Shown one piece after another: positions 5,218-51,329 of a stretch of DNA of 64,000 nucleotides. The stretch's first letter is position 1, and the number at the start of each line of letters is the position of its first letter. The stretch spans positions 6,931,079-6,995,078 of the forward strand of contig OZ316898.1 of NCBI GenBank assembly GCA_973895155.1. The letters are read 5' to 3'. Origin of the DNA: Marsupella aquatica (Eukaryota; Plantae; Marchantiophyta). The notes below the pieces were generated by a model. The model did not search any database. It was given only the letters and a program-made list of their open reading frames with translations, and had not been told where the DNA came from. Both the position numbers and the translations under genes were made by a program.

Positions 5218-6446
5218 ATTTTAGGCCAAAGTCATCAATAATTGTTAGTGGGGTGAATTTTTACACTTTTAAAAACTAGGCTACTTACAAGTACACGAAA
5301 TGCAAAGAGTGGTCAAGGGATGGTCAACGAGGGTCACACATGATACTAACGCCGGTGCGGTCCACGACAGGGAAGGGTCTCATGCGGAAGAGCGGCAAAC
5401 CGCACTCCCACACCCCACCTCTCCACCGCCCTCAACAAACACAGAGGGAGCGGCAGATTCATTCCCGCCATCACCCGAGCATCGGTGCTTTTTTCGTCGA
5501 GAGAGGAAAGCCCCGGCAGAAAACCCCTCAAATTTAGCGGAGTCACGAGTTTAGGGTTACGAGTGCCCCTAATTGAGACACCCTCGACTGGGGGATGGCG
5601 GAAGTCTGCCCCCTGGACCCCGACCCGCTATTTTCTCCTCCCCATCCCTTCTCTACAAAAGTTTGGCGAAATGGAAAGAGCTTTAGTATGGTTCGGATTC
5701 TTTCGTTTTGGCGCTTATGGGTTTATACAAATTCGAGTCATTTCCCGCATTGGTCACGTCTGCGAAGTGACCGAGGGGCAAATCGATGATTGTGAAGGAG
5801 CTGACGTGAATTCCGAGGTGGAACTCGATCGAAGGGAGCAAGGAAAGGGACATTTCGTCGACGATGCTTCATATGCTTTGTTTGTTTTATGATGACGATT
5901 TGGACTCAGAACCAGTTTACAGTTCACCTGTCAAATGCCAGTTTGGTACTGGAGCTCTGCAATTTGCGAGGATTACGTTCCTCTGATGATTTGAAGTGAA
6001 AGACGGTCCAATAATATTCAATTTTGCTTTGCAATCGGCTGTAGGAGGTACGTTATTTCAGAATCGGTTGGTGGGTTGATTGTATGTCCCTGGGAATCTA
6101 ATCCGTGGGATGATTTGTCGAGAACTTCTGCCGCCTCTGTTGTGATTGAATTGAATCCGTTCTTGCCTGTTCTCCGTCTCTGAATGCAGTCGCTTCCGGC
6201 TCGATAGCTAGTTTCTTTTTTGAAACTCATCTTTGAGAGCCGTCTGTGAGCGCTATCTCTCTGTGACAAGCGAATTGTTGGGAGGTTTCATGATCGACGG
6301 TTTGTCCTATCTGGAAATCTGGTTGTTTGTTCTTCTAGAGGAGTCGAAGCTGGTCTAATTGTGATTCTGGATTTTACGTGCATTTTTATCATTGCTTACT
6401 TGCTCGTGTGTTCGGGATGTTGAATATCTTGTAGAGACTGGTGATA

Positions 6447-9400: not shown

Positions 9401-9934
9401 TAAACCTTGTTTTCCCCATCATATCGCATTAATGTTTCAGTTCTGGGCTAATAAGAGTCACATGTGAACTTTGACTGGGAGCTGAAGTTGAGTTTGGTGT
9501 CTCTCAGGACCATTGGGAAGCAGAGCTGCCAAGGCAATCGGTTTCATTGATGACATGATCAAATACTCTTGCAGCAACGCCCCACTGCAAAAGGAGCTCG
9601 AATCCGGTTAGCGACATTCATACCGTTTTCTCGTTTTTTATTATTAAGCATTATTTGTAGTAGTGTGTGGATAAGGGATCTCTGCTATGAAGTTTTGCAA
9701 GCGCCAAATTCAGTCGAATCTCTCAGAAGTCTTATTGCTAACCTTAAGAAGTCAATGTTTGCAGGTAATGTCGGTACCACAGCTGCCTTCCTTGTATCAC
9801 CGCTTGCTTCTGCAATCACCGGAAGCGTTGTTTATGTCGATAATGGACTGCATTGTATGGGTGTAGCTATTGACAGTCCTGCCATCAGCAAAGTTGCAGA
9901 TGCTCCAACCGAGAAAGCTAGTGTACCAGCCTAA
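6447..9934 (+). CDS. ENR1: Plastid enoyl-[acyl-carrier-protein] reductase (NADH), FabI/ENR
   Basis: 12 coding exons: 6447-6738, 7078-7187, 7399-7454, 7648-7732, 7876-7923, 8079-8153, 8282-8393, 8682-8733, 9067-9118, 9327-9384, 9508-9606, 9765-9934. Ala/Ser-rich transit peptide, [38 protein letters not shown], catalytic [22 protein letters not shown]. 5'UTR intron acceptor at 6434. Confidence 0.97.
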
Positions 9935-20850: not shown

Positions 20851-23800
20851 ATGGGGAGAGACATTATGGCCACCACAGCCCCTACCCCCGCGCGCGGGGC
20901 CGTGGAGTCAGCAGCAGCAGCAGCAGCAGATTTCGATGCTGATCCTTATTCCCTCGAGAGGTTCACGCTGTATGAAACTCGAGCGGTAGGCTTGTCTTTC
21001 AATTCGTTCCGTTTATTTTAATCTGTAGTCTTTAGCATTTTGTCCTATTTTTGTTTTTCTCCGTCTCGGACTTTCGTCAATAGTTCTGGCATGGTTGGTG
21101 TCTCCGAGGGTCTCTTCGGGTTTATCTAATCTCAATTCTTGATTTTTGTCACCTGTGTCACAATCTGCGGAACAGAGATTCTATTTGGTCGGGAGGGACA
21201 AGAGTAAGACACATTTTAGGGTGTTGAAGATTGATCGATCGGAGACCTCGGAGCTCAATATCAGCGAGGATCCTGTAGTTTACACTCAGATAGAATGCAA
21301 TAATCTGCTGCAAAGGGTTGCGCAAGGGAACCTAGCAACTGGAGGATTGACCAAAGTCACGAAAGCGTATGGAATCGTTGGTGGGTACATATGCTCTGCG
21401 TAAATATATTATTGCCTACACATTCATAATTGTATTTGTCTGGCATGTCATCACGTCCCCCAAGATCGTTTGAAGAGACAATGGCCCAAGATGATCTAAG
21501 AAAATATCTTACTTCTTCCCTTGTTTTTCCTCATTATATCTAGTTGGTCCCGAAGTCTAATGTGTGCTGATTCTGGATCAAGCCATTCAGTGCAGGAGTT
21601 TCGTATAATATTGTTTGTTTGTCTGCGGTTCAGAGTCGCTCAATGTTCAAGAATATTGTGTATGGAATATTGGCTGACGGAACTCTTCCTCTCACAGGGT
21701 TCATAAAATTCTTGGAGTCTTATTACATGATTTTGGTCACAAAGCATCGTCAGATTGGGATGCTTTGTGGCCATGCGATCTATGCAATCGAGGAACATCA
21801 GCTAATTACCATTCCACATACGTCTGTTCAAACTGATGTTGCATCCTCAAAGGCAGAGCTTAGGTAGACTCTTATCGCTCACAATCACAAAGGTCACCCC
21901 CGTCCATTTCTCACTTGACATTCAGATACTTCTTGAATTCTGGATATGCGCTATGCACTCTCTATCAACGCTATAGATTGATCCTTTCCACTCGTGGATA
22001 GTCCGCCCGATTCATTATCCTGTGAATGTGTCCATTTGTAGGTAGTGCAAATAACCTTTGCTACATATCAGCTATTGATGTGATATTTTATGCCGACTAA
22101 ATGGGTTCGATGGACAGGTACAAGAAGTTGCTATCAGGAGTTGACCTGACTAAGGATTTCTTCTTCAGCTACACCTACCGCATCATGCAAAGCTTGCAAC
22201 GCAATGTCCTTGTCCCGGAGGGTGAACCTCTACCATATGAGAACATGTTTGTATGGAATGCTTATCTCACTCGAGGTATCCACGAACGACTCAATAGCAG
22301 TTGCTGGACCGTTGCCCTGGTTCATGGATATTTTGAGCAGGTAAATTGTCTGTTGTACCAAGTGAACTTTACGAGTAACCTGTCCTGGTTTATAGTGCAG
22401 ATCCCTTTGTAGAGCACTGTATGAAGGTTTGCGCAGATGTTGAAATTCTTTGCCGAAACATTACAGAATTTGGTCTAACTGGTGACAGTTCATGCCTGAG
22501 ACTTGTTCTGCCTGTCATTTATTTGCAGTCCAAGTTGTCTGTGTTTGGACGCATATTTGTGATCACCCTCATTGCCAGAAGGTCGAGACACTTTGCAGGC
22601 ACCCGGTAAGATCAGATCTCTATTCCTGTTCATGCTCTGGACGATGACATGTGACGACTAGCGTTTATCCTTTGCCTCAAGCGAAAGAAGTGTGTTTCTG
22701 CGGGATAGTGTCAAACCGACCGAATGAACGGGACTGGATTGTCAGAGTGTGATTGAAATGGAGGGCCCGGTACTGTACTGACAATTAGAGGGACTTTAGC
22801 AGTGTTGCGTTGAACAGCACTTCAACCGTTGACGTAACAAAAGACATAATACAAAGTGTTTTGGATGTGATTCCCATTTTTACCAGTTCACCAGCGCCAT
22901 TCACTTTGAAACTGCGAGTACTTGAGAACACTGGAGATTGTTGCTAAAATCATCTTGGGTCCCTGAAGTTTATGTCTGTTGGTCATAGACAGAGCTGAGT
23001 AACACATTGATATCGCTTCAATCCAGTGGGCCTTTTGTTGAACGTGAAAGTGAATGTTTTAAGCTCTAATTTATCGACGGGTCTTTGATCAGCCTTCTGT
23101 ATATTTTGACAGGTATTTGAAAAGAGGTGTCAATGATAAGGGTAAAGTTGCGAATGATGTGGAAACAGAACAGATTGTGCTAGACGAGGAGTCTGGATTT
23201 GGTGCAACTGTAGGCCAGATGAGCTCAGTTGTGCAAAACCGGGGCTCTATCCCACTCTTCTGGTCTCAGGAAGCTTCCAGGCTTAGTCCTAAACCAGACA
23301 TCATATGTACGTACGGCTATTTTATATTTACTAAGTTTTTAGTCGTGATCATGGCAAAGTATTTTTGCCTCCATCCTTCTTTCGACATCAGAGCAGAGTT
23401 TCTAGTCTTTTACTGTCGAGCTCTGCTCTGTCACCTATCTTATACCTCGGGGTATATTCTATATGTGATAACTTCGTTTGCTCTGCACAGGAGTTTAATG
23501 TTCATGGAGTTCTAGTTGGGTCATGTGATGAGGTGCAGTGACATGGAAGGACTGTTGGAAATGTTTGACTGAAGGATTGCTTTTGCTACTGTGGTGATAT
23601 TTTTCTTGCAGTGCAAAGATATGACCCAATCTATCAAGCTACAAAGCTGCACTTCGAGGACCTTGCTCAAAGATACGGCAACCCAATTATTGTTTTGAAC
23701 CTTATTAAGGCATGGTTCTTTCGTGCGTATCACAGCCCGTCCTTCTAGTCTACTGATTCTGATTTCTGTTGTCACCACCTGTTGCCAGGGTCACGACTCT

Positions 23801-26800
23801 TAATGTGCTTGAAGGGTTTAGGGATCAGTAAAAGCTGCGGATTTTATCTTATCCTGTCAATTTCTGAGAGGAGATCAGGTAGTCAGTCACCAGTGGACAT
23901 CTCTTGTTAGGTCATGCATAGTGCAAACAACAATTAGACTAATATCCGGTGTTTTTCCAGACGGTGGAGAAGAGGCCCCGTGAGATGATGCTTCGACGAG
24001 AGTTTGCAAACGCTGTTGGTTACCTTAACAACATATTTCCAGAAGACAGTCGGCTGAAGTTCATTCATTGGGACTACCACAAGTTTGCTAAAAGGTTTTC
24101 TCTCAGCTCCATTACCAATATCATATCTGAAGGTCGTTTCGGTCATTTTGACATGAATTAATGTGTTATCGTTTCTGTGTTGCAGTAAGTCAGCAAATGT
24201 TCTAGCAGTCCTTGGTGCCGTAGCCAGTGAAGCTTTGGACCTCACTGGCATATATTATAGTGGAAAGCCTTCCATAGCTAAGCGGAGGGGACGACTACAG
24301 AGATCTTCTACTACAACGATGCAAGTTTCTTCACCATCCTTTCATTCCTCTCAACAAATCCTCTTTGAGATGCTCGTCGATCTGATCTAACTTTGAAACA
24401 TTTAGGAGACTTGTTTCCCATTACTGGGTCTCTAGGGTGCCAACGTCTTTTTGCTGGAAGTCTGTGAGTATACAGAAACGATTTTAGTCCACCGACGAAG
24501 ATATTTTGCTGCATCTCCAGACCTAGGTGCGGCTGGGGGGTGACGAGAATTGGAAGAATTGTTCCGATCACCTGGAAGCATTGTGTTTAGGCTACTTCGG
24601 ACGAATGAATGCAACAGGGACGATTGTATCTGTGGAGTTGCTGTTGCTGTTAGATACGTATGATGTGCCACGAAGAACATGAAACCTTGTGCTGTACCCA
24701 TTTCTTGTTGCGTGTACAAAGGGTCCTGTTACAACCAGTAATTATTTGGATTGCTCTTGTGACTACAGGGAGACCATTTTGGGGCGAATGTCTCCCCCTC
24801 CAGTCAGAGAACTAACCAGAGATTTTGGGAGCATGACCATCACCGGCGTCAGCAGCATAATTCGGGATATAGAAAAGGATCGTGCGAAAGAAAGGCCGCT
24901 TGCTACAGGAAGAAAACCTCACTTTCAGTGCGGAGTTTTGAGAACAAATTGTATTGATTGTCTTGACCGTACAAATGTAGCACAGTATGCTTATGGATTA
25001 GCAGCCATTGGTCGCCAGCTCTATGCTTTGGGGTACACCGATGCAGTTAAGGTCGACCCAGATTCTGGAGTGGCGTCAGCGCTGATGGACATGTATCAAA
25101 ACATGGGTGATGCTCTTGCTTTGCAGTATGGTGGTTCAGCAGCGCACAACACTGTAAGTTTGGTGTTGTAGGAGAGTTTTAGTGAGAAACTCTCTGCTTT
25201 CTGTGAAGAATTCAGATCAGTAATGCATGTCATAGACAGAAACCAAGTACCATGATTCCAGAGTAGCTTTCAGTGCAATTCAAGGAAAATGTCCTCTAAT
25301 TAGAACATCCGATATCCATGGTATATTGTGGTTAGACCGTGCTTTTTTCTCTTTAACAAAACCCTTTCACGAAATCCCCGTTGAATTCCGTGTTTTCTGC
25401 TATTCTCTGTCTGGTCTAATGTGTGAGTTACACTGTTCTGCAGGTCTTTCATGAGAAACAGGGAAAATGGAAGGCTACGACCCAGTCGAAAGAATTTTTG
25501 AAGTCTATCAAACGTTATTATAGCAACACATACACCGATGGTGAAAAACAGGATGCTATAAACTTGTAAGGCTGGCCACTGTCCTTTATAATTTTAGTGT
25601 ATCGGTTTACATCTTCTCATAGATTGATTGGATGGCCGTTCGATACAATGCTTGCTTTGGTTCCCAACCGTGCATGTAGCGTTGTCTTATTCTGGATTTT
25701 TTGTGCCATGCTATTTGTTTACAATGTACTAGGAAAGACGTCACATGAGGCTGCGTGTGTCCGGTATGTGTGCTATATTTATTGATAAGGTTTCATTGCT
25801 TCTTTACCGACCTGAATGGACGTAAAAGGCCGAAATGAAAACAATTTCTTCCAGGAATTAGAACGAAATTTTGTTTGACAATATTGATGGCATACTGGAT
25901 AAAGACGCATGTTTTTCTCTTATGTTGATATTCCTCTTCTCGAGGAAGTGTTGTTGTAGTAGTTTGATACAATCAGACAATTCGTAGTACCATAGCTTCA
26001 CTAGCCACAATATTTAAATGGAAACTTATCACAATAAATAATGGTGCCATATTCGCTGCTCACGAATGGAAAACTCCTTGTGAAGGTTTTTGGGACATTT
26101 TCAGCCACAGGAAGGCAAACCTGCTCTCTGGGATCTTGATTCTGACTATTATCTACATCTGGGGGGCTTCGGTGATGAATCTCCAAAAGAAGCTGATAGG
26201 TAATGCTGGAAGCTTTTACTAGCTTTAGGTTCACGGCCACCTGGAACTTAGACGGAAGGGCATGGTATTTGATTTGTTCTTTCGATTGCTTAGGAACGGA
26301 GAAAACGAATAGTGCAAACGATTGCTTTGCAAATACTCGGAGGATTCTTTCGGTCAAAAACAGCTTCCCAGAATACCTGACACGGCACAGAAAGCGACTA
26401 CGGTTTTGATGTGAAATGGTCGTCGTTTCTACCTTTTCCTTGTTTTCCTTCTAGATTGGTGAATGTTTTGGAGTGCTGTGGTCAAGGGCTCACGAGTTTA
26501 CTCTCCCCCTGTTTTGGTGTACAGGGTTGCCCAAAAACCTTGGATGGAACCTGTGGTTCAACAAAACTTGAGTGGTGCTATCTCATTTTTCCCAGCATAT
26601 CGGCAGGATTTTCGACTTGCAAAGTTGACTTCTTTCGACAAGCTCTTTCAGATTACTTGTGGTCCAATAAAGAACGTCCGCTTGTATAATGAATCTGAGA
26701 ATAGGATTGGAGGAGTTTCAATCACAGCACCTGACGCTGCGTAAGTCTTATGGAGAAAGTTATCTCCTTTAACCGTTGTCGAGAGTCGAGATAGTTGTCT

Positions 26801-33502: not shown

Positions 33503-36228
33503 ATGGTGTCGGATGCTGACATTGTGCGGCGTCTCACCAGCGTACTTCGGAAAGCCGACCTTTCTGTGACTACCACTGCTGCTATTCGGAAGCAGTTGGA
33601 GAGAGAGCTTGGGGTAGATCTCACTGAAAGAAAGGCCTTCATACGAGAGCAGGTTGATATATATTTTCAGTCTTTAGAGCAGCCCAAAGAGGAGGACGCG
33701 GAAGAGGTGCAAGAGGACGGAGAAGTAGACGGAGAAGAGGCAGAGGAACAGGGAGAAGAAGAGCAAGAGCTAGAGCAAGAGCCAGAGCCAGAGCAAGAGG
33801 AAGCAGAGCCGGAAGAGGAAGAGGAAGTAGAACAGAGGCCTGTGAAGAGGACAAGGCAGAGTACTAGCGAGCCGGATTCCAAACGTTTTAAGGCAAAGAT
33901 CGACCGAGCCATAAGAGCCAGGTCTTTCTTCGGCATTTCCCTTCAACCTTGGCCCTTCTGCTGTCTTAATTCCATGGTATGAAAAGGCTAGGGAAGTGTT
34001 GTCATAGTGCTAATCTGAATTGCTGGGAACCCCAGCAGGATATTGATGCGGCGTTCTTTACAAGGAATTCGCAAAATGTCTTCAATGTTTGGGTTAGCTG
34101 TAGGGTGGAACAAGAACTTTTCCTAAGGAGGCTGTGGGTCTGACATAGAGTCACATTAATATCACTGGGAGTGATATGACACCTCCAGTTTGACAATTCC
34201 GGTCGCCGTCCTAAAATATTATCGCACAAGAGCCGACTAGAGCAACAGTCTGAATCTCTTCTCTCAATACAATGGTTCAAGATTCTGGCCGATAGATTGT
34301 TTTGATTTCGGTGTCCGGTGCGGGTGAAGGGAACTTCCTGGTGCGCTCTCCGCGCGATTTAGCCTGATTTTGTTTTTTGATTGTTTCCAAAACAAGTAGG
34401 AAAGGACGCTACCTCACTCGGAGTGTGTCTTTGAATGTTTATCCGGGATTCCACGACTATGCCTCCTTACACTTTGTTTCAATTTTTGTGTATTTGACCA
34501 CTCAAGCCATTATACTTATTCCGGGATAGTGGTTGCGTCACTCGGGATACATGACTATGATTCCTAGAGTCGTATGAGTAGTGTATTTGTCACCAACCGT
34601 AAATGCTATTACCCTTGTCATGGATGGTCTTCGCCGGGGCATGGAGGGTGGGTGAAGAAACAGTGAGATTCTTAGTCGTCAATGTTTTATTTCTTTTATT
34701 CTTTTCGTACATTGTTTTGATAGATTTGTGCAGACGACCGCCAGATGACCGTAGGAATACAAATATGGGGTACAAGGTACAGAGGTTATAGTCTAAGCGA
34801 TAACATAGATGCAAGAAATGATCATATTCATATGACGGGAATCGGCACAAAGTCGCGAGTTGAAGCTAGATAGTCAACGGCTATTTGATAAGCCAATATG
34901 TCCCCGCGCCAGAGGTCTAAAGTTCAATCGTCATGCGATGCTTATTGTTATCGGTGGAGCTGGAGGAATTGGGAATGCCTTAGTGGGTCACTGACACTTT
35001 CCTCACTTGCTTTGCTTGTAGTTTGCCAAAAGAGAAGAAAAAGAGGAGCGGTGGAGGTGGAGGACTGAATAAAGCTTGCGGCCTTTCTCCAGAGCTACAA
35101 GCAATTATTGGGGAACCTGAATTGCCTAGAACTCAGGTGAAGATCTTGATTGATTGGTTAAGTTTCTCTTCGGGATCTTGCGGTGACACAATGAATCGAT
35201 TCCTAGTTCTGATAGGAATGAACCGGTTCAGGACTATTGTACTCAGTCAGGTACGTGACATATTTCTGCAGGTCGTAAAGCAACTTTGGGTATACATCCG
35301 TGCGAACGAACTTCAGGATCCTGAGAACAGGAGAAAGATACTTTGCAATGATGAACTACGTGGACTATTTGGTGTGGACTCCACTGATATTTTCAAGATG
35401 AACAAGCTCTTATCCAAACACATTTGGCCTCTTGATAAACCAGCTGATGGTAAGTACGATAACGCACGAGTTTGAATTCAACTCATCGTATTGTCAGAAA
35501 GATGGCTTGAGGATAGAATAGGTTTGCACCTCATGGAAGATTTATTGAATTATTGAACTGGCAGGGGAACCTAAAGCCAAGAAGCCAAAGGCTGAGAAAG
35601 TAGTTACGGAAAGATCAAACACCGATAGGAAGGAGAATGCGAAGGTGAAGAAAGAGAGTGATAGACAAAAGAATGAGAAGAAAGAAAGTGGAAGGGGGAG
35701 AAGTTCTGGACTCCTTCCTCTGTCCGAAGCTCTCGTGGAGTTCTTGGGTACGGATGAAGAAGAAATGGAGCAGCACGAGGTTACAAAGGCTCTCTGGGAT
35801 TACATTGCTGCCAATAAATTGCAGGTATGTTATTTTATCACCTGCAGTCTCTCTGAACTAAAAATATAGCCTAGGCGTAAGGGTAGTTGTGCTTGTGGAC
35901 GTTTTGCCTTCTCCTATAAACGACTAGCGAGGATCATCCTAACTGAAAGCTAAAATTCAGCCCAGACAGGGCGAAGGCAGTCACTATTAAGTGTTACCCT
36001 GCCACTTAGTGTGAAGGCTGCTTTTGCTGGTCTTCTTGTATTTGTACAAGCGAATAGCTCTGCTGCATTCAGGATGTCTCATCCCTTTGTTTATATCATC
36101 AATGTTCGCAGGATCCCGCAGACAAGAAGACTATAATTTGTGATGAGAAGCTTCAAGATCTTTTCGGATGTGAAACATTTGTTGGGTTTAGCCTCACCAA
36201 GCTTTTAGCCCCCCATCTGAAAGGGTAA
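33503..36228 (+). CDS. DEK-C + two SWIB/MDM2 domain protein (UAF30/Spp27-like)
   Basis: Exons 33503-33921, 35022-35136, 35272-35449, 35565-35824, 36112-36228. N-terminal DEK-C (MVSDADIVRRL...LGVDLTERKAFIREQVD), Glu-rich linker, SWIB1 (LSPELQAIIG...RTQVVKQLWVYIRANELQDP...MNKLLSKHI) and SWIB2 (LSEALVEFLG...LWDYIAANKLQDPADK...LTKLLAPHL). Confidence 0.93.
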
Positions 36229-38830
36229 ATTTATACACGTAGGAGCATACTTCAGGAACCCATGGTTGTCTTCGATCCTCGGTAAGAAGGCTTTATGTAA
36301 CACAGTAGAAAGAGGATCTAAGTTCAAACTTTTAATACATTTTGGTTCAGGTGCCATTCTTACCAAGTCAGGCACAAAACATAGTTACTCCTATCTCTCA
36401 AAGGGCACAGTCAAACATGCAAATCAAAGTGCAGCTTACTGGGGTGACAACATCGCCTTCGTCCCAGAAGGCAAGGATTCCTCAATCAAAGGAGAGGGCT
36501 TAGCCTATATCTTGGCAGTTGAGTCGCGAGTCAAACTCACTGAAGGCCATTCTGTGGAGGCATACTAAGGACTTTTCTGAGGTTTTTTTCTTTCTTTCTT
36601 TTGATTACAAAGTTGTTCACTAACTTGGCTGGCTCGTGTTATAAGTATATGTTCTTACGGGTCTTGATCTTGGGTTTTACATAGGAGCAATCTTCGTTAT
36701 CTCGATCGTTGTGGGTCTCTACGATTTGTTATGGCAGTGAGATTGTGGATTGGTACTAACTTGCTTACTCTTGCAATTGGAAATGTTCGGCAAGTGAATT
36801 CCATACAGGCTTTGTCTACTGAAATTGGGCATACGATATAGATGCTAAGAGGGTCTTAAGTGTTTCAATATACTGATTATGAAAGAGGATGTGCAACCGA
36901 TTCAGTATTCTGGTATTGTGTGAGTAGCTTCACAGTACACACTATGAGCGGTTAAAGTCCAGTGGTTCCAGTCTGCTTGCGGTATACATCAGTAGGCTGG
37001 AGTTTCTAGGATTGCTTCGTGTCTCTTGGATTAAAATGCGGCCAAGGACCTGTAAGGGTTTCGGGAGCAACGAAGTTTGTCTGAATGGACCAACTTTTCT
37101 GAGGTCGATATCAGGAAGGAGTTCAATTTCTACCCAGGTTTTGGTAGCCATCATGGCCTTGGTGTCATTTCATAGTTTGGCTCGGCTTCGAATAGAATCT
37201 GTATGGTCCAAACTTCTTGTGATGGTGGTAACAAGGCGGAGTCATTTTAACTCTCTTTTTTGCGTTCAAATCGAGGGCGCTACTGTCCAAGTATCTGATT
37301 ATTTTCTAGCGTTTTGTAGCGACCTTGTTCTTGCATTGTGTCCTTTGAGTTGTTACTGTGAAGTTGGAAATTCTTACTGGCGTGAAACATGACATCCTGT
37401 GGCGCGTGATCCAAATCTTGTTACTTTTTAATCCGCTCAGATTGCAATGCAGACAGTTGGTTACTTAAGGACTAATTTGGGTAACAATGGAGATGTTCTA
37501 CATGAGGGCAGGACATGTGAGTTGTTTTTGAGCAGGAACATTTAACTTCTTTTCTGTGCTACTTGAAAATATTGCAAAAATCTTCATGAACTTGGGATTT
37601 GTTGGTTTTCACGAGGCTTACAAGATTTTTCTTTTTGTATACTTCGTCGATTCTAATTGATAATGTGAATGTCTTACAAGTTCTTCGACTCGACAATGGT
37701 GCGGTGCAATCTTGACGGGTGACCAGCATTTACTGGAACGCATCCCTGGTTTCCTGTGCGTGATTGGATTGTTATTTTGTAAGTTCTGATTGGGTCTTGT
37801 CGGAAGATGGACTCTGCGTGAATGGTATCTTTACGTCATTTGTTTGGTTCTCTCAATCACGAGGTCCCTGAACCGGAAGTTTCTTATGTTCTGCATTTAT
37901 CGTGTAGTCCCATCTTAGTTTCGCTTCGGACTCCCCCCTCAAACGGGGGTATCCAAACAAAGGTGAGGTGATGGGTTCCGGAAGACAAAGTTGGAGAGTT
38001 AAATTTTTATTGAGAACGGGTGAATGCATATCTTTAATATTTAATCTGTAGTCCCGGTTCTGAGTTTTTATTTGTAATTGGGTCCTACCTATCCAGGACA
38101 ACAATATGTGATCCTGTTGCATGCAATTTGTTGTTGGACGGTCTCTATCCGGGACAACAAAGATTTTTAACTGTGAAAGGGATTTTCTTTATCTAGGGCA
38201 ACTAAGTAGTAGGTTAATTGTTCTTTATCTAAGATAACAAAGTAGCGGGCATTATATAATGGGCAAGGCACTTTTGTATTGAATGGACACTGGTTTACGA
38301 AATACTTTTTGTACACTAATGTAAGAATTCTTTGGCAGGGACCAGAGCACATTAATGCTGTGTCTTGGGAAATGTCCAAAGTGAAAGCCCTCCAGAACAT
38401 AACCGTGAGGCTTTTATTTAGGACAAATCTCTCTCGACCCCCGCCCCTCTATTAGGACAACCTCTCCTGACCCTCGGCCCCTTTACTAAGGACAATCTTC
38501 TCCCAGGAGAGCGCTTTACCTAACACAAAGAAGGATACAATGAAACAAGGGGAGAGAATTGAGCAAGAGTATCCAATGATTGGACTTTGTTCATTGAAGT
38601 GAGGAATGAAGCCTAAGAACTTTCTTCATTGAGTTGGGACTCCGCGAATGTCTGACAGACTTCAGCTGTTTCTCCGCTTCACCAAACTGGAAGTAATTGA
38701 CAGTATTGGAAGAGTCTCAACTACTTAATTCCAATGACCCTAAAATCATCTGGTTTCGACTAGAAAGCAGAAGCGATCTTCCAAAGTCCCCTGCCCGGCT
38801 GAGACTGTTCTTTACAAGATACTTCCTTTT

Positions 38831-41484
38831 TTAGAAAGAATCTGGATGCTTTCGGTAAACCTTGCCTGTAAGGGTAAATGCTTTTTGTTTCTTTTTGCAC
38901 CCATTTCCTTGCATTCTCCAGATTTTTTGAATATTTAAAACATACTTTCTGCTTTTGCATCGATTCACCTTGAATCTTTACATTAATTTGCCGGAATATT
39001 GGTTCAGGCTGCTTCCTGGCGAAAGACCTCAGAACCTGGGACACATGCCCACCGGCCGCATGCTTTATGTCATCTACTACGTAGTATGAACTCCGGGTAA
39101 ATTCTGACAACTTACACCTCGTAAGATCGAATAATCATACTACGCTTCGCAAGCTCGGTACAGTATTACTGGGTTAGCCTACTACTGACAAATCGCTTTA
39201 TTGTCAAGCTACGAACTGTAGCTCATTAGCTTACATTGAAAGCATTTGGAAAAACTAGCTTTTAATCTACGACCTCTACTTACAGTAGATGGTCCTGCCA
39301 CCAGCGTTTTCTTCCAGTTCAATGGATAATATCTGATGTCTTCAAATTTCTTCCTGCACCTCACGTCTGTTGGCATTCAGCCTACTGAGGGTGCCTTTTT
39401 TTTTATGCCTTGAAAACCCAAAGCAGGCCCATCCAACATATAATAGACGTCCTGTTTTGGAGCATGCATTTCTATGTAAGGCAGCCACAAGGGGACAATA
39501 CCTAAGGATCAGACAGGGACCCAAACCAGGAGGGAGAGAAGATTAAACCAGAACCCAAAGTGGACAACCAGGGCTGAGCAGATAATCAATACCCTCACCA
39601 CTACACTACACTCCACTCACACGCACACATACCCTCCACACCCCCTATGTGTGGAGGGAGGATTGAACCTGGGACCTCTCGGTTCTAGGTTCATCGTCTG
39701 GCCAACTGACCAAATCCAATTGGTTTACTGAGGGCGGCTTTACAAGAAGTTGGGGCAGGTTCCACCTTTTTTTGGTCCCCAAGATCAGATCAAGGTCATC
39801 CACTTGGGAGAAACTGCTGTTCACTTCACAAAACATTGGGGACACTTTCAACCAAATCTTATTACCAATGGTACAGAGTGGGCCCAATTTTTGCTTATGT
39901 AGAACACTCTTTTGTCCTAGATTTTAGACCACCTATGTTGAAGGTCTCTTTTTCTGGCTCCTTGGTCCATTCCTATTTTAAGTCATTTGCATTCAAAAGG
40001 GACTCACGTTGAAGGTCTCTTCTTCTGGCCCCTTGGTCCATTCCTATTTTAAGTCATTTGAATTCAAAAGGGACTCACGTTGAAGGTCTCTTCTTCCCAC
40101 CCCTTGGTCCATTCCTATTTTAAGTCATTTGAATTCAAAAGGGACTCACGTTGAAGGTCTCTTCTTCTGGCCCCTTGGTCCATTCCTATTTTGAGTCATT
40201 TGCATTCAAAAGGGACTCACGTTGAAGGTCTCTTCTTCTGGCCCCTTGGTCCATTCCTGTTTTAAGTCATTTGCATTCAAAAGTGACTCACATTCAAGGT
40301 CTCTTCCTCTGGCCCCTTGGTCCATTCCTATTTTAAGTCATTTGCATTCAAAAGTGACTCACACATCCTTCATAATATCTTCTCCTCTCACATCTAGAAA
40401 GACTTTAACCAAGGACTACCTGAAATTCAGGTGGAGTGGGTACTCAATCTGTCATCTTACAAATTAATGAGTGGGTACTCAATCTGTCATCTTACAAATT
40501 AATCTAGCATCAGTGGTTGCACTTGGCTTTACAAGACCTTGTGGGCCATAAAGGATTTCAAAAATGCTTTTAGCATGGGGACACTACATTTAGTGTGTGC
40601 AATGGCCCTCCAGGTTGCTTTGGTAAAAAAACCTCCAAGTGCCCTCAACTTCTTGGAAAGTACTCCTGAGCTGGACTTGATCTTGAATGATCAACCTAAT
40701 TCATATTTTTCAACTTTGGGATTCATGGTATATTTATCATCAAGCATGGAAAGACTTGGATTATAAAATTTCTTTATTTGGGGAAGGATCTAAGCAGATA
40801 TGTTTAATCATCTTGAACAAGTTTTACAATCAATTCTGACCCGTTTTCAAAGTCTACTTGGAACAATTTAAGCAGAAATGTTACATATCTCTTAATGTCT
40901 TGCAAATCAATTCAGACCCGGTTTCATAGGCTTATCCTTCTCTCTGCGCAATAAGGTTTCCAGCCTTAAAAAAAGAAGAAGGAGAAAATGAGAAGAATCC
41001 GGAGAGATAGATTACTGACCTACTGATGACCTCCGCCACCTTCAGCCACTCCCCTAAAGGCAGCCTAATAAGCCCTGAACTTTTTGGGAGTACCGTATAG
41101 CCCTACAATTCACTTTATTCCCCGCCGCCAAGTCGAAGCATCTGGCAGAAAAGCCTGCCCAGCTTCTTGACGAACAATATATCCGTTTTGGCTTTTGTTT
41201 TCTCGTTTCCGTTAATCTAATTGTTGTCTCAAACGATTTCAGAGAATTACATGGCTTTCCGTTAATCTATGTTTTGCCTTGGAGAGAATTATGTGTAATC
41301 TCGTTGATCTACCCCGTTTTTTTCAAAAGGAAAACTCAAGATTGAACCATTTATTAGCTGAGTTACTCTCCGCCATTCGAGAATATGCAGAACATGTGCA
41401 CTCATGTCTGACGAAATAGTGTCACAGGCTTTGTAGGCTTTCATGCCAAAGCAGAGAGTGCTCTACTTTCCTACGCGCCGCCAT
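38831..41484 (-). CDS. Unrecognised small basic protein (~90 aa), five short exons
   Basis: Exons 41484-41467, 41102-41020, 39353-39284, 39035-38969, 38865-38831, all GT-AG and phase-compatible. Product: MAARRKGYTVLPKSSGLIRLPLGEWLKVAEVISRKKFEDIRYYPLNWKKTLVAGPSTVLRSFARKQPEPIFRQINVKIQGKVYRKHPDSF*. Start context AAATGGCG. The first exon is the least certain. Confidence 0.62.
39396..39725 (-). mobile_element. Full-length tRNA-derived SINE (~330 bp)
   Basis: Minus strand has A box TGGTCAGTTGG, B box GGTTCAATCC, and 3' end TTTCAAGGCAT plus poly(A). Flanked by a 13-bp TSD TACTGAGGGTGCC (39383-39395) / TACTGAGGGCGGC (39726-39738). Confidence 0.88.
39937..40362. repeat. 71-bp minisatellite x6
   Basis: GTTGAAGGTCTCTTCTTCTGGCCCCTTGGTCCATTCCTATTTTAAGTCATTTGCATTCAAAAGGGACTCAC starting at 39937, 40008, 40079, 40150, 40221 and 40292. 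Confidence 0.97.
40434..40503. repeat. 35-bp perfect tandem duplication
   Basis: GAGTGGGTACTCAATCTGTCATCTTACAAATTAAT x2. Confidence 0.95.
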
Positions 41485-41764
41485 TTCGAAGTTTGGAAAC
41501 GACCTCAGATTCCTCCGTCCGAATTGATCCGTCGTCCCAAATTTTTCGTTCACAAGCACTGGCGACAACCAGATTTGTTCGTGTGTCACCAACGCAAGCC
41601 CAATAATTAATGGCGAAGCTACGAATTCTAGCAGTGCGGATAATGTAGATCGAATGTGATTATGTGAAGCTGGATTGTGCGGGGCTCGATCGGGGCGGGC
41701 ATATTGGCTGCTATCGACGCTACGAGGGCAACAAACCGACCGCCATGCCCGGCATGGCCTTTCA

Positions 41765-41910
41765 GTTGCAAACGGACCTCCTAGATTCATTCTTTTGAGC
41801 TCGCAAACTGACCGCCTAGATTCATTCTTTTGAGCTCGCAAAGGGACCGTCGAGCTTCATTATTTCGAGCTCTTTCGGATGCAAAGGGACCGTCTAGCTT
41901 CATTCTTTTG
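41765..41910. repeat. Degenerate ~35-bp tandem repeat (about 4 units)
   Basis: GCAAA.GGACCG.CTAG(A/C)TTCATTCTTTTGAGCTC units, upstream of the minus-strand small gene. Confidence 0.8.
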
Positions 41911-44900
41911 AAGGGAGGGACAGAATTGAACCAACACGACCCACACATAGTCCACACATATAGGGAACGGTGACACAGCATCCCAAGGGGCAACTTACCA
42001 TGCATTGGTAAGCATTTCTCCTTTTCGTAGGGGCAACTTCGTAATATCTTATAATAATTTTATATGGAACCAGCCCACTGTTGCAAGGTAGTCGTTGCTG
42101 CCCAATGCCTGTGTGTTGCAAGATTGTCATTGCAGCCATAAACCATTGCATCTTGTGGTAGGTGTGGTAATGTTGTGTCTTGCACAGCAAAGTCAAGGTG
42201 CGACAAAGAAATGCGGGGGAAGCGGAAGGGGAAAACAAAGAATTGTTGTTGGTTGGGCAGTTTTGTCTAGTAGACACAATCAGAAGTACCCCTAAGGTAC
42301 TTTGACTTATAAATTATTTACTTGTCTTTCACCTAAAAAGTATGGTAGTTTTTTCAGTTTAAAGATGTGCATTTTTATTCCATTTATTTCTTTGAATCAC
42401 TATTTTAATAGGTTTGAATACGATACTATAGCTGCTATTTGATAAACTATTTAAATTAATTGGTAGTTTACATAGGGTATAATTAACATTATTGTCAATA
42501 AATTAAACTAGCTGTGTCCTAGAAGGAACATGCTATATCATGAATCAAGAGTAGCATAATTTTTAAAGTTTTGTCGTTTTTGCCAGAGTGACTAATGTGA
42601 CTTTGTGTGTGCATAGAAGAAAAAACATTGCTTATCTAAAATGCTAAGATTAATTGCCCAGATTCTCGCTATTGGGGTAGGTGCCTACTCTTGGCAGAAA
42701 TTCAGCAACGAAGACTTTTCATACCTGGGGAAGACATTGAGTGGCCAAGATTTCTCAGAGAAATTAAATCTAGCAAATTTTAGGCCACTAGAACGAATGT
42801 AGATCAGTAACCATTACCACGAGAAAAGCAAGACAAAAGGAGCCTCCCATTAGATACCAAGCACCTCCAGGCAAGTGGACCATAGCACAGGTACTGTACT
42901 TGCCTCGTGGGGCGTCTTGAAAGTACAGTACCAGGGCATCATAATGTACTGCTTGTATCGTTGGCCGTGGCAAGGTTCTGTGGCCTACTGACGACCTAGC
43001 GCAGGTACTGTCCTTGCCTCGTTGGGCGTGGTGAGAGCTGGGGTGAGTGTTGTCACGTACTGCTTAGCCTTGTTGGCTATGGAGAGGTATTGTGGCGGAC
43101 TGAGGGCGAAGAGGCCAATGGTGGGGTCTAGGTAACTGTACACTAAAATACTGTGCTTATTTTGCGCCATCAAAAACAATTGGCTAAGCAAAACGAATTT
43201 GATTAAAAAATTTTTTTGGAGTGAACCAAAGACCAAAAAACAAAATACAGCTAGACTGAAAAGAAAATTTGAAAAATGTGATTTCATAAAGGAGGGAACA
43301 GTAAGAGAATCCAATGACAATTGTCTGGAACCCTAACTAAATTACTTTTTAAGTTGAACAGAAGGAAAGAATCTTTAAAAAGTGAAGAATCAAAGAATGA
43401 AAGGCAATGAGTACATTACATGACAATATATAAAAGAATAATAAACAACTTAGTTGAATTCTTGACATTCATTTAAAACATATGACAAAAGAGAGCACAT
43501 ATGACTCTATCTCAAATTTGATTTTGTTGGAATTTTAGAGCAGGTAGCCTTTGTCGACGCTACATGTATGAACGACTATACGGACCCACCTCCCAGTCCG
43601 GTGTACTCATTTCGGACGCCAATTGGGGGGAGGCCGGAGGCGAGAACTGAATCCAGCCCGGGCCCGACCCGACCACTTAGGGAAGAGTTGCATAGATCCT
43701 CACGGAACTTCAAGAGGCAACTAGAAGCTGCAACAGTTTGCTTTTGTCTAGCTCGAGTAACCCTGCTGTCATGTGGTAGCCAGCGTCGAGGGCGTTTAAA
43801 TGACTACAAATGAATCCAATTCGCCGTCACAACAGTCATACCAAGCCATCACAAGGAAACAATGTCTGGAGTCAAAAATCCTATGGGCGATTCATAAGAA
43901 GACCAACACCGTGAGCGGCCCCATCTTTAGCCCTACATTCAGTTTTGTTGTGAGATTGGAGGCCCTGAACCAGGATAAATTGTCGAGAGAAAACCTAGCA
44001 TATTAGCATCCTGCAAAAACTGCAACAATGGTATAGCACCGAGTCGCTCGATTATATTCAATATGTAACAATTTGTCTTTAACAAGTTACTTGCTGTATG
44101 TGACAATTGCTATGTGACATCTGAATTTACACTTTATACTCATGATTGATCAATCTAGTGTTCAAATAAGGCGAAATTGAAGTGCCGTTCTTATTAGTAT
44201 CGCCTTCAAAGAGCGACAGTACCGTGACTCATTCTAAGTAACACTGAAACGCAACGTCTTACTCACACTCTGTGTTATTACAATAATAGTTAATTTTGTG
44301 AACGAGTACTGGATAGTAGTTTTCGTGTCTGCCGAAAGTCCTCCATCGCCGGTAAATGTGATAAAACAGAAAAGAAACAGAGACCCCCGCAGAGACCACT
44401 GGCATTTTGGAAGATGCGAGGCACTTGGGCTTGAAAGGGATCCTCATCCGGAAAAAGTGGGAGATGAGTGAAAGGATGATGACGCCTACGGACGTGAGAG
44501 GAGGAAATTCTGTCCACCGCTGCATTACTTTCTCTTTGTCGATCAGCGGATCAGGTATTCCGTTATCTTGATCGTTGGGTTCTCAGTTCGACTGCGATAT
44601 TTCTTTGTTTGCCGACGCGCTCACTGTTATATCTTTCTTAACCATATGAATTTTGGTAATCTGGCCTCAATCCTTATCTGCGCGAGGGACTGATAAGGAA
44701 TAGCTAGAGGTAGTGATCAAACCTTAGAGGACTCTCTCAGCAAGTGAAAGTCTCGGTGAAAGTGATGGTCACTACAATCAGGTGACACAACGTGGTTTTC
44801 CATAATTCCTGGCGAATTCAAGGCATAATTTTCGTTTGAGCGCATGAATCAGCTTGGCTAACGATCAGACACTGTTCAACGGTTTTAGTTCAGTATCAAA

Positions 44901-47900
44901 TATTTGCTCAACGGCTCAACCTGAAGTGAAATATGAGGAGACAAGGATCATATATATGACGCAACTACGACGCTGGCTAGAGCGTAAGGGATAAAATAAG
45001 TTAGAGGAGCTCCTATCGCGTAATTATATGTCTTGTTTAATTGTCGCGCCCACCTCCAACTACTGTACTGCCATGCGAAGGTGATTCCGGCCATGTGACT
45101 AGTTTCGTTCCACGGCTCTCGGAGATTATTGTATTATGACATTGAAAGTGTCCTCTGAGTTGAATTGGTTCACGACAAGGGAAGAGTACAAAGATTTTAC
45201 AACTTGTTCTGGCATGACTCTGTTAAAAAGTATTATGATTAGGAAACATTGTCCTCTCATTGCTGAATAATGAGCGGATGACACGCGGGATACTTAAAAG
45301 ACCGTTCTACAAGTCCGGAGTCAACAGGATGTATAGGTGCTATTTTGCGGCATGAATGTATTGCACACAACTTCGCTGCTCATCAGGCCACAATTGCCTG
45401 CTAGCATGCTGTTGTGATGCGAGTCTACGACGCCCAAATGGCGGCTATTGTGGACCAGCAGGCCTTGGGCACGCTCTCATCAGACACTGCAGGGCTTACG
45501 TCCACGCCAAATGATTAATTGTTCCCTTCAAACACTGCGTCTTGCAATCCCTTTCACCCATTCTATTGTTAATTTAATCTGGCTCTGCGTGTATTCGTTT
45601 CTACCCCGAGTTCTACCTACTATTGTCCGTCCGTTATCTGGATGCGAAGCTCGATCAAGCCCTGCCAGCCTCCCAATCAAGGTTAGATACCGCCAGGACC
45701 TGCAAGCGTTTTCGGTCATCAATGGTGGAGAGAAATTAACGTTTTCTGTTTGAGTGCTGCTCGCCCCAACTAGGTCAATGTCGTACTCCTAGGAGCTGCT
45801 TCGCAATAACTTCATAGTTAATGCAGGTCCCAAGGGACCACGCAAGGTTAAAAATTATGTCCCGAAGGTTTGTAACTTTGAATAGTTGCCTTTCACGGGC
45901 TCAAATCCCCTGTCCACAGCACAACTCTACAGATGTACAACCTCTCTTGTCGGCCTTCCTTCCCTGTCCCACTGCGTTCTTGTTTGGTACTCTTGTCCCT
46001 TACAATTGTATCTTACAAGGCCATTTTCTCTCCGACACTTGCAGTACTTCCACTTAGAGTTTGGCTTTGTCCGACCCCAAATCTTCGCTGGTCACTTCTA
46101 TTTCTGAATAGGAAGGACAGCACAGTACAAAGCCAACTCCAAAGCCAGCTTGCCAAGGTGGAGGGGTACAGTGTTTGCCTGGCCCTCACCATTGGAAGAG
46201 TGGGATACCCAATACCTCCTTCATCAGGGTCACGACGCTCGTTCAACATGGTGTTATATCTTAGCTCAACACAGATTGAGACTCTATTGGGCAGGCTTTG
46301 GCAGTTGGCAATCCATTACTAATTTCCTTCAAAAAGAGTAAAGGTAAAGATTCCAACCGATACTTCACGAGCCATCGCACAATTTAAAATACAACGAGCT
46401 GACGTAGATCATCCATCTCCCAGCATAGGGACACAAGTGAGAGGCGCCAACTGAGACCACACGTTTATCTGAGAAAGGGTGACAAACTTACTTACTGGGA
46501 CACAGCCCTCGATTGCTGTGCTAGGGACCAAGCTTCCCGTGCCCCAAGAAAAGGGGGAAACATTCGCTAGCCAAACTTGAGTTTAAGTCAACCTCTATGA
46601 CTTCTACTTCTAGCCTCTCTAGTGCCTTGTAAGCCAAGGTCTACTCTTCTTGGGAAACTTATTTATTAGAACTCCATTAGTCCCCCATTTATTATAACAG
46701 TGGGTCCGGCTACCTGCTTGCCAGTTTCCATCGATCTCCAATTTACTGTAGATCTCCAATTTAAGATAAGTGTCAAGTCTTTGTCCAAAAGTTGATTCGA
46801 CCATTAAACTTAAACTTGTAACCTTACTTGCCACAACGAAAAAGTATTACTGGTCGGTTACCTGGCTGGTGTATAAAACTTTAACTTGAAACCTTGACGC
46901 AATGAAAACTATTGCTGTTGGGAGAACTAATGTCCAGCAAACCCTGCAATTCTGTAAAGCCATGCATTTGGAAATGCAAAGAAATCTACCTCATGTCTTT
47001 CATCTTATGTGTGCGATGGATAGCATGCGAGAGCAGACAGCACCCAAAAGGTACAATAAATGGGTTTCCAATAAACACTTCGGCCAGAAAAACAATAATC
47101 AAGGATGTGTTGTTTTCTTGGATGAAGAACTAACGATATCTATGATCTAGTGTAAGTTGCTCAAAGGCAGTTTCTCCTTCTCTAAACAAGATCTACGAGT
47201 CAGCACACTTAGATGTTCTTTACATATTGAGAAGATGTCATTCTCGTCTCGTCAAGAAGATACAGTAAGATTTCTAGGACGTTACGTGATTTGAGTTATA
47301 TCACAACTTTGTCATTTGAATGTAGATTTTTGGATACTTAATCAATGCTTCTGCAACTTCATTTTTATCTAGTTTTATCTAGATAAAATCTTAAAAGCAT
47401 ACGGCAGGCAGGCAGGCAATATTGAAACTTTTCATGATTGTGCTCTGAAATAGATTCCCAACGAGTCTTTGAATCGTCTCTCTCACTCGCGGGTGTGCCA
47501 ACCCACTCTCCAGAGGATTGAGGAAAACATTTGTACCGCGAGAAAATAAAAATCCCCAGACTTTCCCATTAAAGCATACAATCAAACGCCAATTTCCTTT
47601 TAAGCCAGGGGGGGGTGGGGGGGGAGGTGGGAAACGTTCCTCGCTCGCTGGCGTTGCGGAGAGATGCAGGTCTGAGCGGTCCCCACTCTTTCCAGAAGCG
47701 TCATTAAGTAAGAGCTAAACAATGCCCTTGCCAATAGGAGGTTATGTTCAACTAACGGACCCATTTGCGACGGTATCAGTCCATAGGATGCAAGTTGCAT
47801 CTGTAAAGGTGGGTAGGTGAGTTGAACACAGATATTTCGGCATCCACTAACAGGACATTTGCTGACCGACCAACTGAATGACATCTGGAGAAGTCTTTGG

Positions 47901-50900
47901 TAGAATGCTTGGACCTCAACCGACTCGTTAATACGACATTATAAGGTTGAACCATGAAATCAATGTGATTGTTAAGGTGATGTGTGTGACAATCATTGGC
48001 ACATTTGAACCGAGCTCACTATTCTTCCACTGTTTTTCTTACCATAATTCTTTCTTGTCACTCTTAGTAGACATTCCAATGTTCAGAATCTTGCAATCTT
48101 CCATCCAGATTCTAAAATGGCTGCAGCTCTCTTCAATCCTTCTGTCTGTCTCTGTCTCTCGATACTGGGGGACTCTATTTGATGGGCATAAAAGGCGAAC
48201 TCAAAATTGAGCACGAGGGTTTTGGAAAGCTCATCGAGTACGGTATGAATGAGCACATTGCAGGTCCAGTGGAAACGGATCTCCCCTGGATATATTTCCG
48301 AAAGTGAATGTGTCAGAAATTGTAAGCGAATGGGATGGACGACTCCACTCCGTGATTTTCGCATACTGCTGCTCATAATTACGACAAGAAGAGTTCTGGG
48401 TAGAATTAGCAGTCCCAGGTACCGAAACTCTTACAGTACTGATTGTTACGTACATGACACTTCCCATTCCTGTAGCTAATTGGTGAGAGGCTGAGAGTTT
48501 GGACATGTGTCTAAGCAGGTCTCTCTCATACACAGACCAATAGACCATCGATTTGAGAATCGGATGCGCTGTACAAATAGCACCTGGAATTCCCAGAGGA
48601 ACTTTCGTTAGTTCTGAAGTTCTGCATGAGTTATCTTTCACGGGTAGCCTTACGAGTCCTGCATGTGTAGTAGTTGCAGAGCAGACCTAGCGACTCAAGC
48701 CTCGCATGTGTTCCTTGTCGCGAGGTCCGTTGTTCTCAGGTACTCCAGTGATGTTCTTTCTTAGAGTAGCTACATCAGTCTATTGAAGGAGTCAGCAGAA
48801 CTGAAGGAGTCAGCATTATTATGTTATTATGCACTTCTTTAACTTGTCTTTCTTTTTCTTTAAGCTTCTTTAACTTGTCTTTCTTTTTCTTTAAGCTTGC
48901 ATCCGGCATTTTCTGCCCCCTTGTTTAGTACTAGTTTATTAATTTCAGAGAATTATTGGTTAGACTGTCCTCAGAAATGTATGAAGTTTGAAAAAAAAAA
49001 AAAACTAAAGGGGAGAAAGGGGAAAGAGAATGATCCGCTCAGAGGGTCTATCAAGCAGTGCCCAGATTACAGATTCTTGAAGACCCAAAGAATCGGAACT
49101 GTCTACAGATATAGAAGACTGAAGATAGCGGTCCAAATCTTTGGGACTTCATCAAATCATTGGCTCACCCTAATTGCACCGGATTCCTCATTTCGATGTC
49201 AAAGGGTCTTTCATTGAGAATAGACCTGGTCCTTTGAGATTGAGACATCCGGTGGACATCCTCACTGACTCTCAGTAATCATGAACCTTTGATATGAACC
49301 TAGGTCCGCAGTTCTTTCTACCTTTCTGACCAGATCTGTCTGCAGTCATATATCACATCAAAGTGCGATAATTCAAGTATGATAAGCCGTTAATCTTTGG
49401 AGACTATGTTGCGTACTCGAGGCATCGGAACCCTTTGACATTGTGCTTCAATAATTTACTTCTTCCTCAGAGCTCGGTTCTCTCATTTCCCCGTCAGAAC
49501 ATCATATCTGAGGGAGGGAAGGGATTGATGGGACTCCCCAAACTAAGACAAGAGAAGAGTTCAAAATTTCAAATGAATGAACCTTCCGGTGTGGCAGCCC
49601 CTGTGATCAAAAGATAATGTCTTCCTCGAGTTAGGTGTAGAGTCTGACCGATGGATTCACATCTAGAGAGGGACTGCCGGACTGGGCATGTCTGAAGACA
49701 ATCAAACGACAAAGAAAGTAACATGAGGACAGAATTTGCCAATTAGTTGCCGGACCTGCAATGCGCCATCAGCTTGTCAGAGTGCGTACTACAGTCGAAT
49801 ACAGTAGTAGGCTGACTCCTGTGTCTGGCATGGCCCCACCGTTCTTTCAACTCGATCCGCTTATTCCTTTCTTTTCCATAAGTGTGCTGCCAAAAGAACA
49901 GCCGGGGTAAAACATCAAAGCACATGTGACACGGAAAACCTGTCACGGTAGTACCCGAGCCAATCCTTCATCGTCATTCGTCATCTTAGCAGATCCAAGG
50001 ACTGAAATATCAGGATTAGGTCCCTTTGACATCCATCGTCAAATGATGTTGTCTCGAAAAATTCCTCCATTTTGACTAAACGGGCCAAATAAAGTGCAAA
50101 GGAGGTCCAGAGAGGACAAACACGAAACTCAATAGTTCAATTTCTTTTAAGTCGATCAAAGATCACACGACATCCTCCCAAATTTCCCAAAGGATCGGTA
50201 ACTGATATCCCAGACCATGAGTTGTCCACATTCAATCGATCACCCCTTTCACGTCCCAAGCATTGGTCCCGCCACTCCGGCGAGATGCCATTCGGCAGCT
50301 TACCAGAGTGGCAGAGAGAAAAGCAGATGCTGCAAATCCTACAGCTACAGCGAGGTTCTGTGACGTCACTGGTTACACGTACACTACAGGAATGTCCATC
50401 TTTGTTACCATTCTATTCCTTGCTGTGCTTTCCACTTTCACCAGTAAGCTGTACATTGACGGTACGTCGTGGACCCGCCGAGAGAATTCCTAGCACCATG
50501 CGTCGTGAGGACAACAGGAACGACAATGAGAACTACGGAGATAAATTTTTCCCCCATCCAAGCAGGCAGTGAATCCGTCCTTGCCCTCGACGGGCATTCG
50601 GCCCCAAACGAAACGGTGTACAACAAGGGCACGAAAAATCGAAGCAAGGTTTTGTCATTGAGAGGCGTACATAGCCAGTGGCAGGAAGTTTTGCTACGCA
50701 TGGAGGCAAAGCAATTTTTCATGACGAATTTGGTGAACTGACGCTCAATTCTTTCCAGGTCGACACTTCCGAGGCGTATCGGAATCTCTAGACGACTGAT
50801 CGAGGTCGCGTCCCAATTCGCGGAGCGCACCGCTCGGTCAGGTCCTTTCGACCTGCCTTTATTATTAATTCCCCTGCCTAGTGCCTACCTATGCAAATGT

Positions 50901-51329
50901 GTGGATATCAGGCTGATATCAGCAGATGGGCGCGATTCGCTCATCCGCAGAAGTAGAAAGCTCTCCAGTCTCCACGGTACCATTCTGACGGATCTAGATG
51001 ACAAACACGTACTGTTCGTGTACGTTGGCAGTTGACCGCATCCACTTGCACTGCCTGAGAGCCGCAACCCCACCCGTCCACTTTCGGGCATCTCGCCACA
51101 TTCAATCGCCGCTGACTCACTCGTCTCCCCGAGAGGGACTCAAGTCAGCGTATTTTTTAATGCGCATTTTGCCACATTCGACCTCCCCAACCCGCTTTCT
51201 CCACTTTTGGTGAAAATTTGCTAAATTGCTTGTTTCTCACCTGGACCCCATTCGCCGTCATCCTTCCCTCTGTGGCGAGATAAGGAAATAATAGGAAAAG
51301 CAGATTAAGAATCTACACTGTTCACCATA

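Follow-up and report, generated by a model that had tools for sequence, protein, structure and literature searches.

The exon-intron structure and splice signals of a five-exon chain on the minus strand (positions 38831 to 41484 of the window, the whole 64,000-nucleotide stretch of liverwort DNA that was analysed) do not exceed chance expectation. The original prediction had read this chain as a hidden gene for a highly basic protein of 90 amino acids. Since the chain is not above chance, carries weaker splice signals than verified genes and has no detectable relatives, we infer that it may well not be expressed as drawn; that the chain arose by chance and that no such 90-aa protein is made is our tentative reading, held with a confidence slightly short of an even bet. 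The informative features of the locus are a CpG island, an ATG-free leader and codon usage, and not the exon arithmetic.

Gene model and splice scores

The window carries four Pfam-supported genes on the + strand, each with a CpG peak: an enoyl-ACP reductase (about 7-9.9 kb; peak at about 6-7 kb), a SacI-domain gene (about 21.6-24.1 kb and beyond; peak at about 20 kb), a gene with a DEK_C and two SWIB domains (33.5 to about 37-37.4 kb; peak at 31.6-33.6 kb) and a HAK/K_trans transporter (about 56-64 kb; peak at 57-58.6 kb). The candidate would lie tail to tail with the SWIB/DEK_C gene, at the beginning of a 17-kb stretch that contains three orphan CpG islands and no recognised genes.

Re-reading of the letters reproduced the gene model as it had been described, with five minus-strand exons at the predicted coordinates, introns of the predicted lengths, the donors GTAGAG, GTCAGT, GTAAGT and GTGAAT, the acceptors TAG, CAG, CAG and CAG, and phases that agree along the chain. 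Splice sites were scored with a weight matrix (donors -3 to +6, acceptors -15 to +2) based on the published plant consensus (AG/GTAAGT, TGCAG/G, with the slash marking the exon border). This matrix suits the genome, as the Pfam-verified exon borders of the four genes read TGCAG/G, GTAAGT or GTATGT, and most of the splice sites in verified genes of the window, which are likely true sites, score 1.3-4.7 nats. Proposed exon 1 (41467-41484, 18 nt, MAARRK, start codon context ATGGCGGCG) ends in a weak donor, GTAGAG (-1.2 nats, 58th percentile), and is followed by intron 1 (41103-41466, 364 nt, GTAGAG...TTGTAG), whose last 20 nt have a pyrimidine share of 0.25 and in which no CTRAY motif was found. 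Exon 2 (41020-41102, 83 nt, 27 codons plus 2 nt) is bordered by an acceptor TGTAG/G of 2.6 (99th percentile) and a donor AG/GTCAGT of 1.35 (94th percentile). Beyond intron 2 (39354-41019, 1666 nt), exon 3 (39284-39353, 70 nt, 1 nt plus 23 codons) has the acceptor TGCAG/G at 1.0 and the donor GTAAGT at 1.4, both at the 95th percentile. Intron 3 (39036-39283, 248 nt, GTAAGT...TCCCAG) has a weak acceptor (-0.8, 78th percentile), and exon 4 (38969-39035, 67 nt, 22 codons plus 1 nt), which sits inside a 124-codon open stretch, has the donor AAG/GTGAAT at 2.6 (98.7th percentile). Intron 4 (38866-38968, 103 nt), with 46% A and 33% GC on the sense strand, ends in TTACAG/G (2.3, 98.7th percentile), and exon 5 (38831-38865, 35 nt) contributes 2 nt, 10 codons and the stop codon TAA.

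Translation exon by exon gave the predicted peptide, which amounts to 90 residues when the two split codons (R and G) are included, and the count of 20 K/R (11 K and 9 R) against 6 D/E (4 E and 2 D) was correct. Exons 2 and 3 have only one open frame each, as had been claimed, and the same is true of exon 4. The statement that none of the exons shows as an ORF of its own has to be narrowed, as exons 3, 4 and 5 fall within ordinary ORFs of 55, 116 and 45 aa, respectively.

Chains running from an ATG to a stop codon through exactly four GT-AG introns of 60-2000 nt, with every exon 15 nt or longer and a minimum of 90 codons in all, were searched by dynamic programming. The eight sites of the candidate total 9.25 nats (donors -1.2, 1.35, 1.4 and 2.6; acceptors 2.6, 1.0, -0.8 and 2.3), and six of them rank among the best 6% of the region's GT/AG dinucleotides. 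The best chain in the same stretch reached 12.65 nats on the same strand and 11.86 nats on the opposite strand. Among 82 control windows, searched on both strands, the best chains had a median of 13.8 nats and 95% reached 9.25, while control windows with real genes gave 22-26 nats; all 150 of 150 dinucleotide shuffles also reached 9.25. Because chains of equal score occur in 95% of the controls, in every shuffle and on the opposite strand, the matching phases and open frames are no evidence for a gene, and the structure that had been offered as the sign of one loses that meaning. In nearly every 2.7-kb segment of this genome it is possible to draw a canonical, phase-consistent open chain of five exons and 90 codons. 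When codon usage was added to the splice score the candidate stood at 10.05, a value equalled by the best chain in 57% of non-genic windows (median 10.8, 95th percentile 18.1); the best combined score in the region was 14.1, and the median for sense-strand windows of the four Pfam-supported genes was 25.3. Several other chains that start at the ATG at 41484 score as high as the candidate or higher. The CTRAY branch motif was sought in all four proposed introns and found in none, the pyrimidine share of their last 20 nt is 0.25-0.50, and the verified genes in the window have stronger splice signals.

The local repeats do all lie within proposed intron 2, as had been noted. Two are tandem arrays, one of six 71-bp copies (39937-40362) and one of two 35-bp copies (40434-40503). 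The third is an element of very high copy number at about 39436-40473, where contigs are stacked thousands deep, with depths of this order at about 39416-40035 and 40408-40655. The exons are single-copy, and CpG observed/expected (o/e) within the intron is 0-0.26. This arrangement had been taken to mean that the exons are under selection, but the same outcome results when exons are chosen from unique DNA. The intron 2 element was also examined as a candidate tRNA-derived SINE. Its copy number is very high and a B-box-like GGTTCAATCC can be read at about 39660, and a search of this element for a tRNA with ARAGORN and Rfam gave none.

If the chain is a product of chance, short open frames and GT and AG dinucleotides would have been strung together across unique DNA of the spacer that separates the convergent SWIB/DEK_C gene (+ strand) from the next gene, and the repeats would have ended up in an "intron" for want of a usable frame. 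The basic charge of the product would then mirror nothing other than an A+G-rich strand, and the island at 41.5-41.9 kb would be either unmethylated unique DNA or a promoter serving something else. Standing against a chance chain are the promoter-like island, the ATG-free leader, the codon score, the lack of cysteine, the six good sites out of eight and the quiet DNA upstream.

The 5′ end and codon usage of the proposed exons

These features would find their place in a real, unannotated and lineage-restricted small gene built roughly as drawn, a reading that we regard as doubtful. Transcription would start in the island near 41.6-41.7 kb under the control of a CpG-island promoter, four introns would be removed, and the product would be a basic, cysteine-free protein of some 90 aa that lacks detectable relatives. 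One argument for this reading is the CpG island, a putative promoter and 5′ leader at 41485-41900 (minus strand), which lies precisely at the proposed 5′ end. CpG o/e is 1.15-1.19 across 41201-41800, at the 98-99th percentile of the window (median 0.60), and immediately ahead of the proposed ATG, at 41500-41899, the density is 7-9 CpG per 100 nt. The remaining top CpG windows fall in the 5′ part of each of the four verified genes and in two orphan islands (44.0-45.2 and 50.4-51.2 kb). No ATG occurs on the minus strand in the 218 nt upstream of the ATG at 41484 (41485-41701), which places this leader in the top 2.1% of ATG-to-ATG gaps, and the context ATGGCGGCG, ideal for a plant start codon, is found once in 128 kb (both strands of the window), at this ATG. 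The 5′ end is thus promoter-like and the start codon credible, and a true gene start at 41484 is plausible, at about even odds. A 35-bp tandem repeat of three copies, at single-copy depth, lies some 290-390 nt upstream of the ATG (41768-41872).

Two other uses of the island were considered and set aside. When 41498-41650 was read in another frame as a coding exon, the translation was unconvincing, and its codon score is explained by CpG richness. A + strand gene starting from the island would have to contend with the many + strand ATGs within and beyond it, and Pfam gave no match for the ORFs at 42-46 kb.

Codon usage was assessed with a table of 781 Pfam-matched codons from the four genes of the window, and each gene was omitted from the table when its own coding sequence was scored. 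Over its 88 whole codons the model scored +0.8 nats, in line with true coding sequence (mean 0.48, sd 4.9), compared with a mean of -9.9 (sd 4.5) for unselected chance-open sets, among which the model lies in the top 0.9%; measured against the antisense of genic DNA it lies in the top 1.3%. The exons thus resemble the verified genes in codon usage and differ from the model's own introns, with a per-codon score of +0.009 in the proposed frame against -0.099 for chance-open frames in the introns and flanks. The case for a real gene is weakened by the poor frame periodicity of the exons: their +3 frame scores 0.033 per codon, and the same frame in true genes scores -0.15 to -0.22. The three-base periodicity is therefore weak, and part of the codon signal may be composition. 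Exon GC is 46% and intron GC 41-42%, a trend also seen in the verified genes; the base composition of introns gave no separation when used as a discriminator, the verified introns of the window not being strongly U-rich either.

The predicted 90-aa product has a net charge of +14 and no transmembrane stretch. A K+R share of at least 22% is seen in 6.5% of the chance-open frames of the window, so that the basic charge is unusual, not rare. Zero cysteines in 90 residues has a probability of 0.036 and counts in favour of a real gene. The first acidic residue of the predicted product is at position 24, which is only suggestive of N-terminal targeting, and binding of nucleic acid or ribosomes, proposed from the charge, is only a guess. 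A real gene would also account for the three strong donors and three strong acceptors and for exons that are single-copy and clear of repeats. Set against it are the failure of the chain to beat chance when the freedom to choose among chains is taken into account, the equally good scores of rival chains from the same ATG, and the weak first donor and third acceptor, together with the poor polypyrimidine tracts and missing branch motif.

Relatives, sequence variation and other transcripts

Homology was tested per exon, and pieces of 22-27 residues detect only close relatives, so that a diverged family may have escaped. The search for homologues that had been proposed was thus carried out exon by exon, in Pfam, PDB, protein and metagenome collections, and it yielded no relative of any exon. 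At E <= 10, exons 2, 3 and 4 matched no Pfam family and no PDB chain; the PDB copy was dated 2026 and includes solved plant mitoribosomes and respiratory complexes. In a word-indexed collection of 5.8 billion protein clusters there was no protein sharing three 5-mers with the exon 2, 3 or 4 stretches, in length ranges of 31-98 aa for exon 2, 30-96 aa for exon 3 and 68-217 aa for exon 4; as no 5-mers are shared to this extent, the model is absent from that collection at those lengths, which weighs against a real gene. Exhaustive phmmer analysis of the exon 2 stretch against 1.84 billion representatives gave no true match. Two phmmer hits, P0001 and P0002, align to the low-complexity tail derived from the intron, and BLASTP of exon 2 alone was blank in both. 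Metagenome tblastn with the stretches that carry exons 2 and 3, and ESM Atlas searches with the peptides of the same two exons, also returned none. The suggestion that the product is an organellar (for example mitoribosomal) or other nucleic-acid-binding protein had been drawn from its size and charge and gained no support from the per-exon Pfam and PDB searches; at the low power of single exons, no sequence match points to a mitoribosomal or other organellar small subunit.

Four public sequencing holders of this DNA were found, all of them genomic contigs, from two organisms, and no contig joint matches a proposed intron. One of the two, organism B, is a close relative, with SNPs at about 1.5% in introns 1 and 2 and at 0.6% in the 3′ part. 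Intron 1 has five SNPs in X3 and more in a diverged X4 contig. Exons 2-5 have zero SNPs in organism B where covered; exon 5 is identical in an X4 contig that spans 38798-39130 without gaps and carries a single SNP, in intron 3. At the end of exon 2, one X4 contig lacks 3 nt of a TCATCA repeat (at 41024), a deletion that keeps the frame and is the one indel seen in an exon. The SNP-free exons 2-5 and the in-frame indel would be expected of a real gene, but neither is significant, with one exonic SNP observed against about 3.6 expected (P about 0.13). That single SNP changes the final base of exon 1 (+ strand 41467 T>A; codon AAA to AAT) and is the only exonic substitution seen; it is non-synonymous (K to N), which counts against a real gene. 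The differences are too few for dN/dS to be obtained from organism B. Across the 516 nt upstream of the ATG (41485-42000) organism B has at most one SNP, and this low polymorphism would fit a promoter.

Such a promoter need not serve the five-exon chain. A minus-strand transcription unit may begin at the CpG island and give a product other than this protein, a reading that we consider unlikely; the unit could yield an RNA that is non-coding, one in which only the 20-codon unspliced ORF from the ATG at 41484 is translated, or an mRNA with other exons, for example with donor 41475 joined to acceptor 41053 or with exon 4 lengthened to begin near 39103. What points to a gene start is independent of the exon chain, and the top-scoring chains that begin at this ATG run through other sites. 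Around exon 4 the coding-like signal also continues for 17 codons upstream into proposed intron 3 (38973-39086). Against another transcript, none of the four public holders of this DNA is RNA, the alternative chains have no stronger support than the candidate, and some of them are built on repeat-derived exons. Rfam gave zero families at gathering score in the whole window and zero at E <= 1 in 38300-42000, which offers no non-coding RNA; owing to the same blank, no intronic snoRNA can be brought forward as an argument for a host gene.

Comparison with known small-protein genes

Among known systems, the small basic subunits of the mitoribosome and the respiratory complexes resemble the candidate in a length of about 90 aa, a net charge of the order of its +14, the lack of a transmembrane stretch and small exons. 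Mitoribosomal proteins of the mS33/MRP-S33 type, for instance, have about 90-110 aa. The candidate differs from these subunits in that its exons 2-4 have no match in Pfam or PDB at E <= 10.

Closer in kind are the orphan small-protein genes of bryophytes known as ab initio models, which likewise have a short multi-exon CDS with no Pfam domain and no detectable relatives, and which share with the candidate a plausible promoter and start codon. Accepted orphan genes, however, have transcript support, whereas the candidate is known from sequence and its chain is no better than chance chains; ab initio models of this type require RNA or comparative support. If the gene were true, it would be a further unannotated liverwort gene of the orphan small-protein kind, useful for annotation, and would provide a modest lead on lineage-specific microproteins, as yet with no functional handle.

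The candidate is also like chance spliced ORFs, the comparison that underlies our preferred reading, in its GT-AG borders, its phases and its open frames, which are found in 95-100% of controls, and in having its exons in unique DNA between repeats. Its codon usage, in contrast, is in the top 1% of chance-open frames, and a chance spliced ORF seldom has, as the candidate does, a CpG island and an ATG-free leader at its start together with an ideal start context.

Repeats in and around the proposed gene

Contig depth revealed a very high-copy element at ~39436-40473, inside proposed intron 2 of the five-exon model (39354..41019, - strand), where the summed depth of genomic contigs reached up to about 6,800-44,600 across the four runs, compared with about 17 to 100 for single-copy sequence. 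This element contains the B-box-like GGTTCAATCC, which is followed in the same proposed intron by a tandem array of six 71-bp units; no tRNA was identified in the element by ARAGORN or Rfam. Proposed intron 2 also holds a second high-copy block (40530-40655). Two tandem repeats flanking the model are single-copy: a 35 bp x3 repeat (41768-41872), which precedes the proposed ATG by 290-390 nt and is located in the CpG island of the putative promoter and 5′ leader, and a 34 bp x2.5 repeat (38418-38504) downstream of the model.

The locus in organism B

The locus (38300-42000) is present in organism B, a close relative, at about 98-99% identity (runs X3/X4). Two haplotypes or homeologues of it were seen in run X4, where one contig, covering 41235-41543, shows 16 differences plus 9 gap letters over its 309 nt.

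Other genes, an antisense frame and CpG islands

Pfam domains support a + strand gene at 33503-~37000 that encodes a DEK_C domain (33506-33661), two SWIB/MDM2 domains (35269-35424 and 35717-35824) and an acidic stretch, and its CpG island extends over 31.6-33.6 kb. Pfam also supports + strand exons at ~21600-24100, from a phosphoinositide-phosphatase gene with SacI homology (Syja_N), and at ~7000-9900, from an enoyl-ACP-reductase-type (adh_short_C2) gene; exons of both genes were included in the codon-usage training set. A 288-codon open frame (6389-7255, - strand) overlaps the enoyl-reductase gene in antisense at its 5′ end; this frame has a high codon score (11.3 nats at 6416-6643) and no Pfam match, and may be a mere mirror of the sense-strand exon. 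Two further CpG-rich islands (44000-45200 and 50400-51200; observed/expected CpG 1.08-1.11) both lie within the 17-kb stretch separating the SWIB and HAK genes. No Pfam-recognisable ORF was found near either island, and both may be signs of regulatory DNA or of genes that have escaped recognition.
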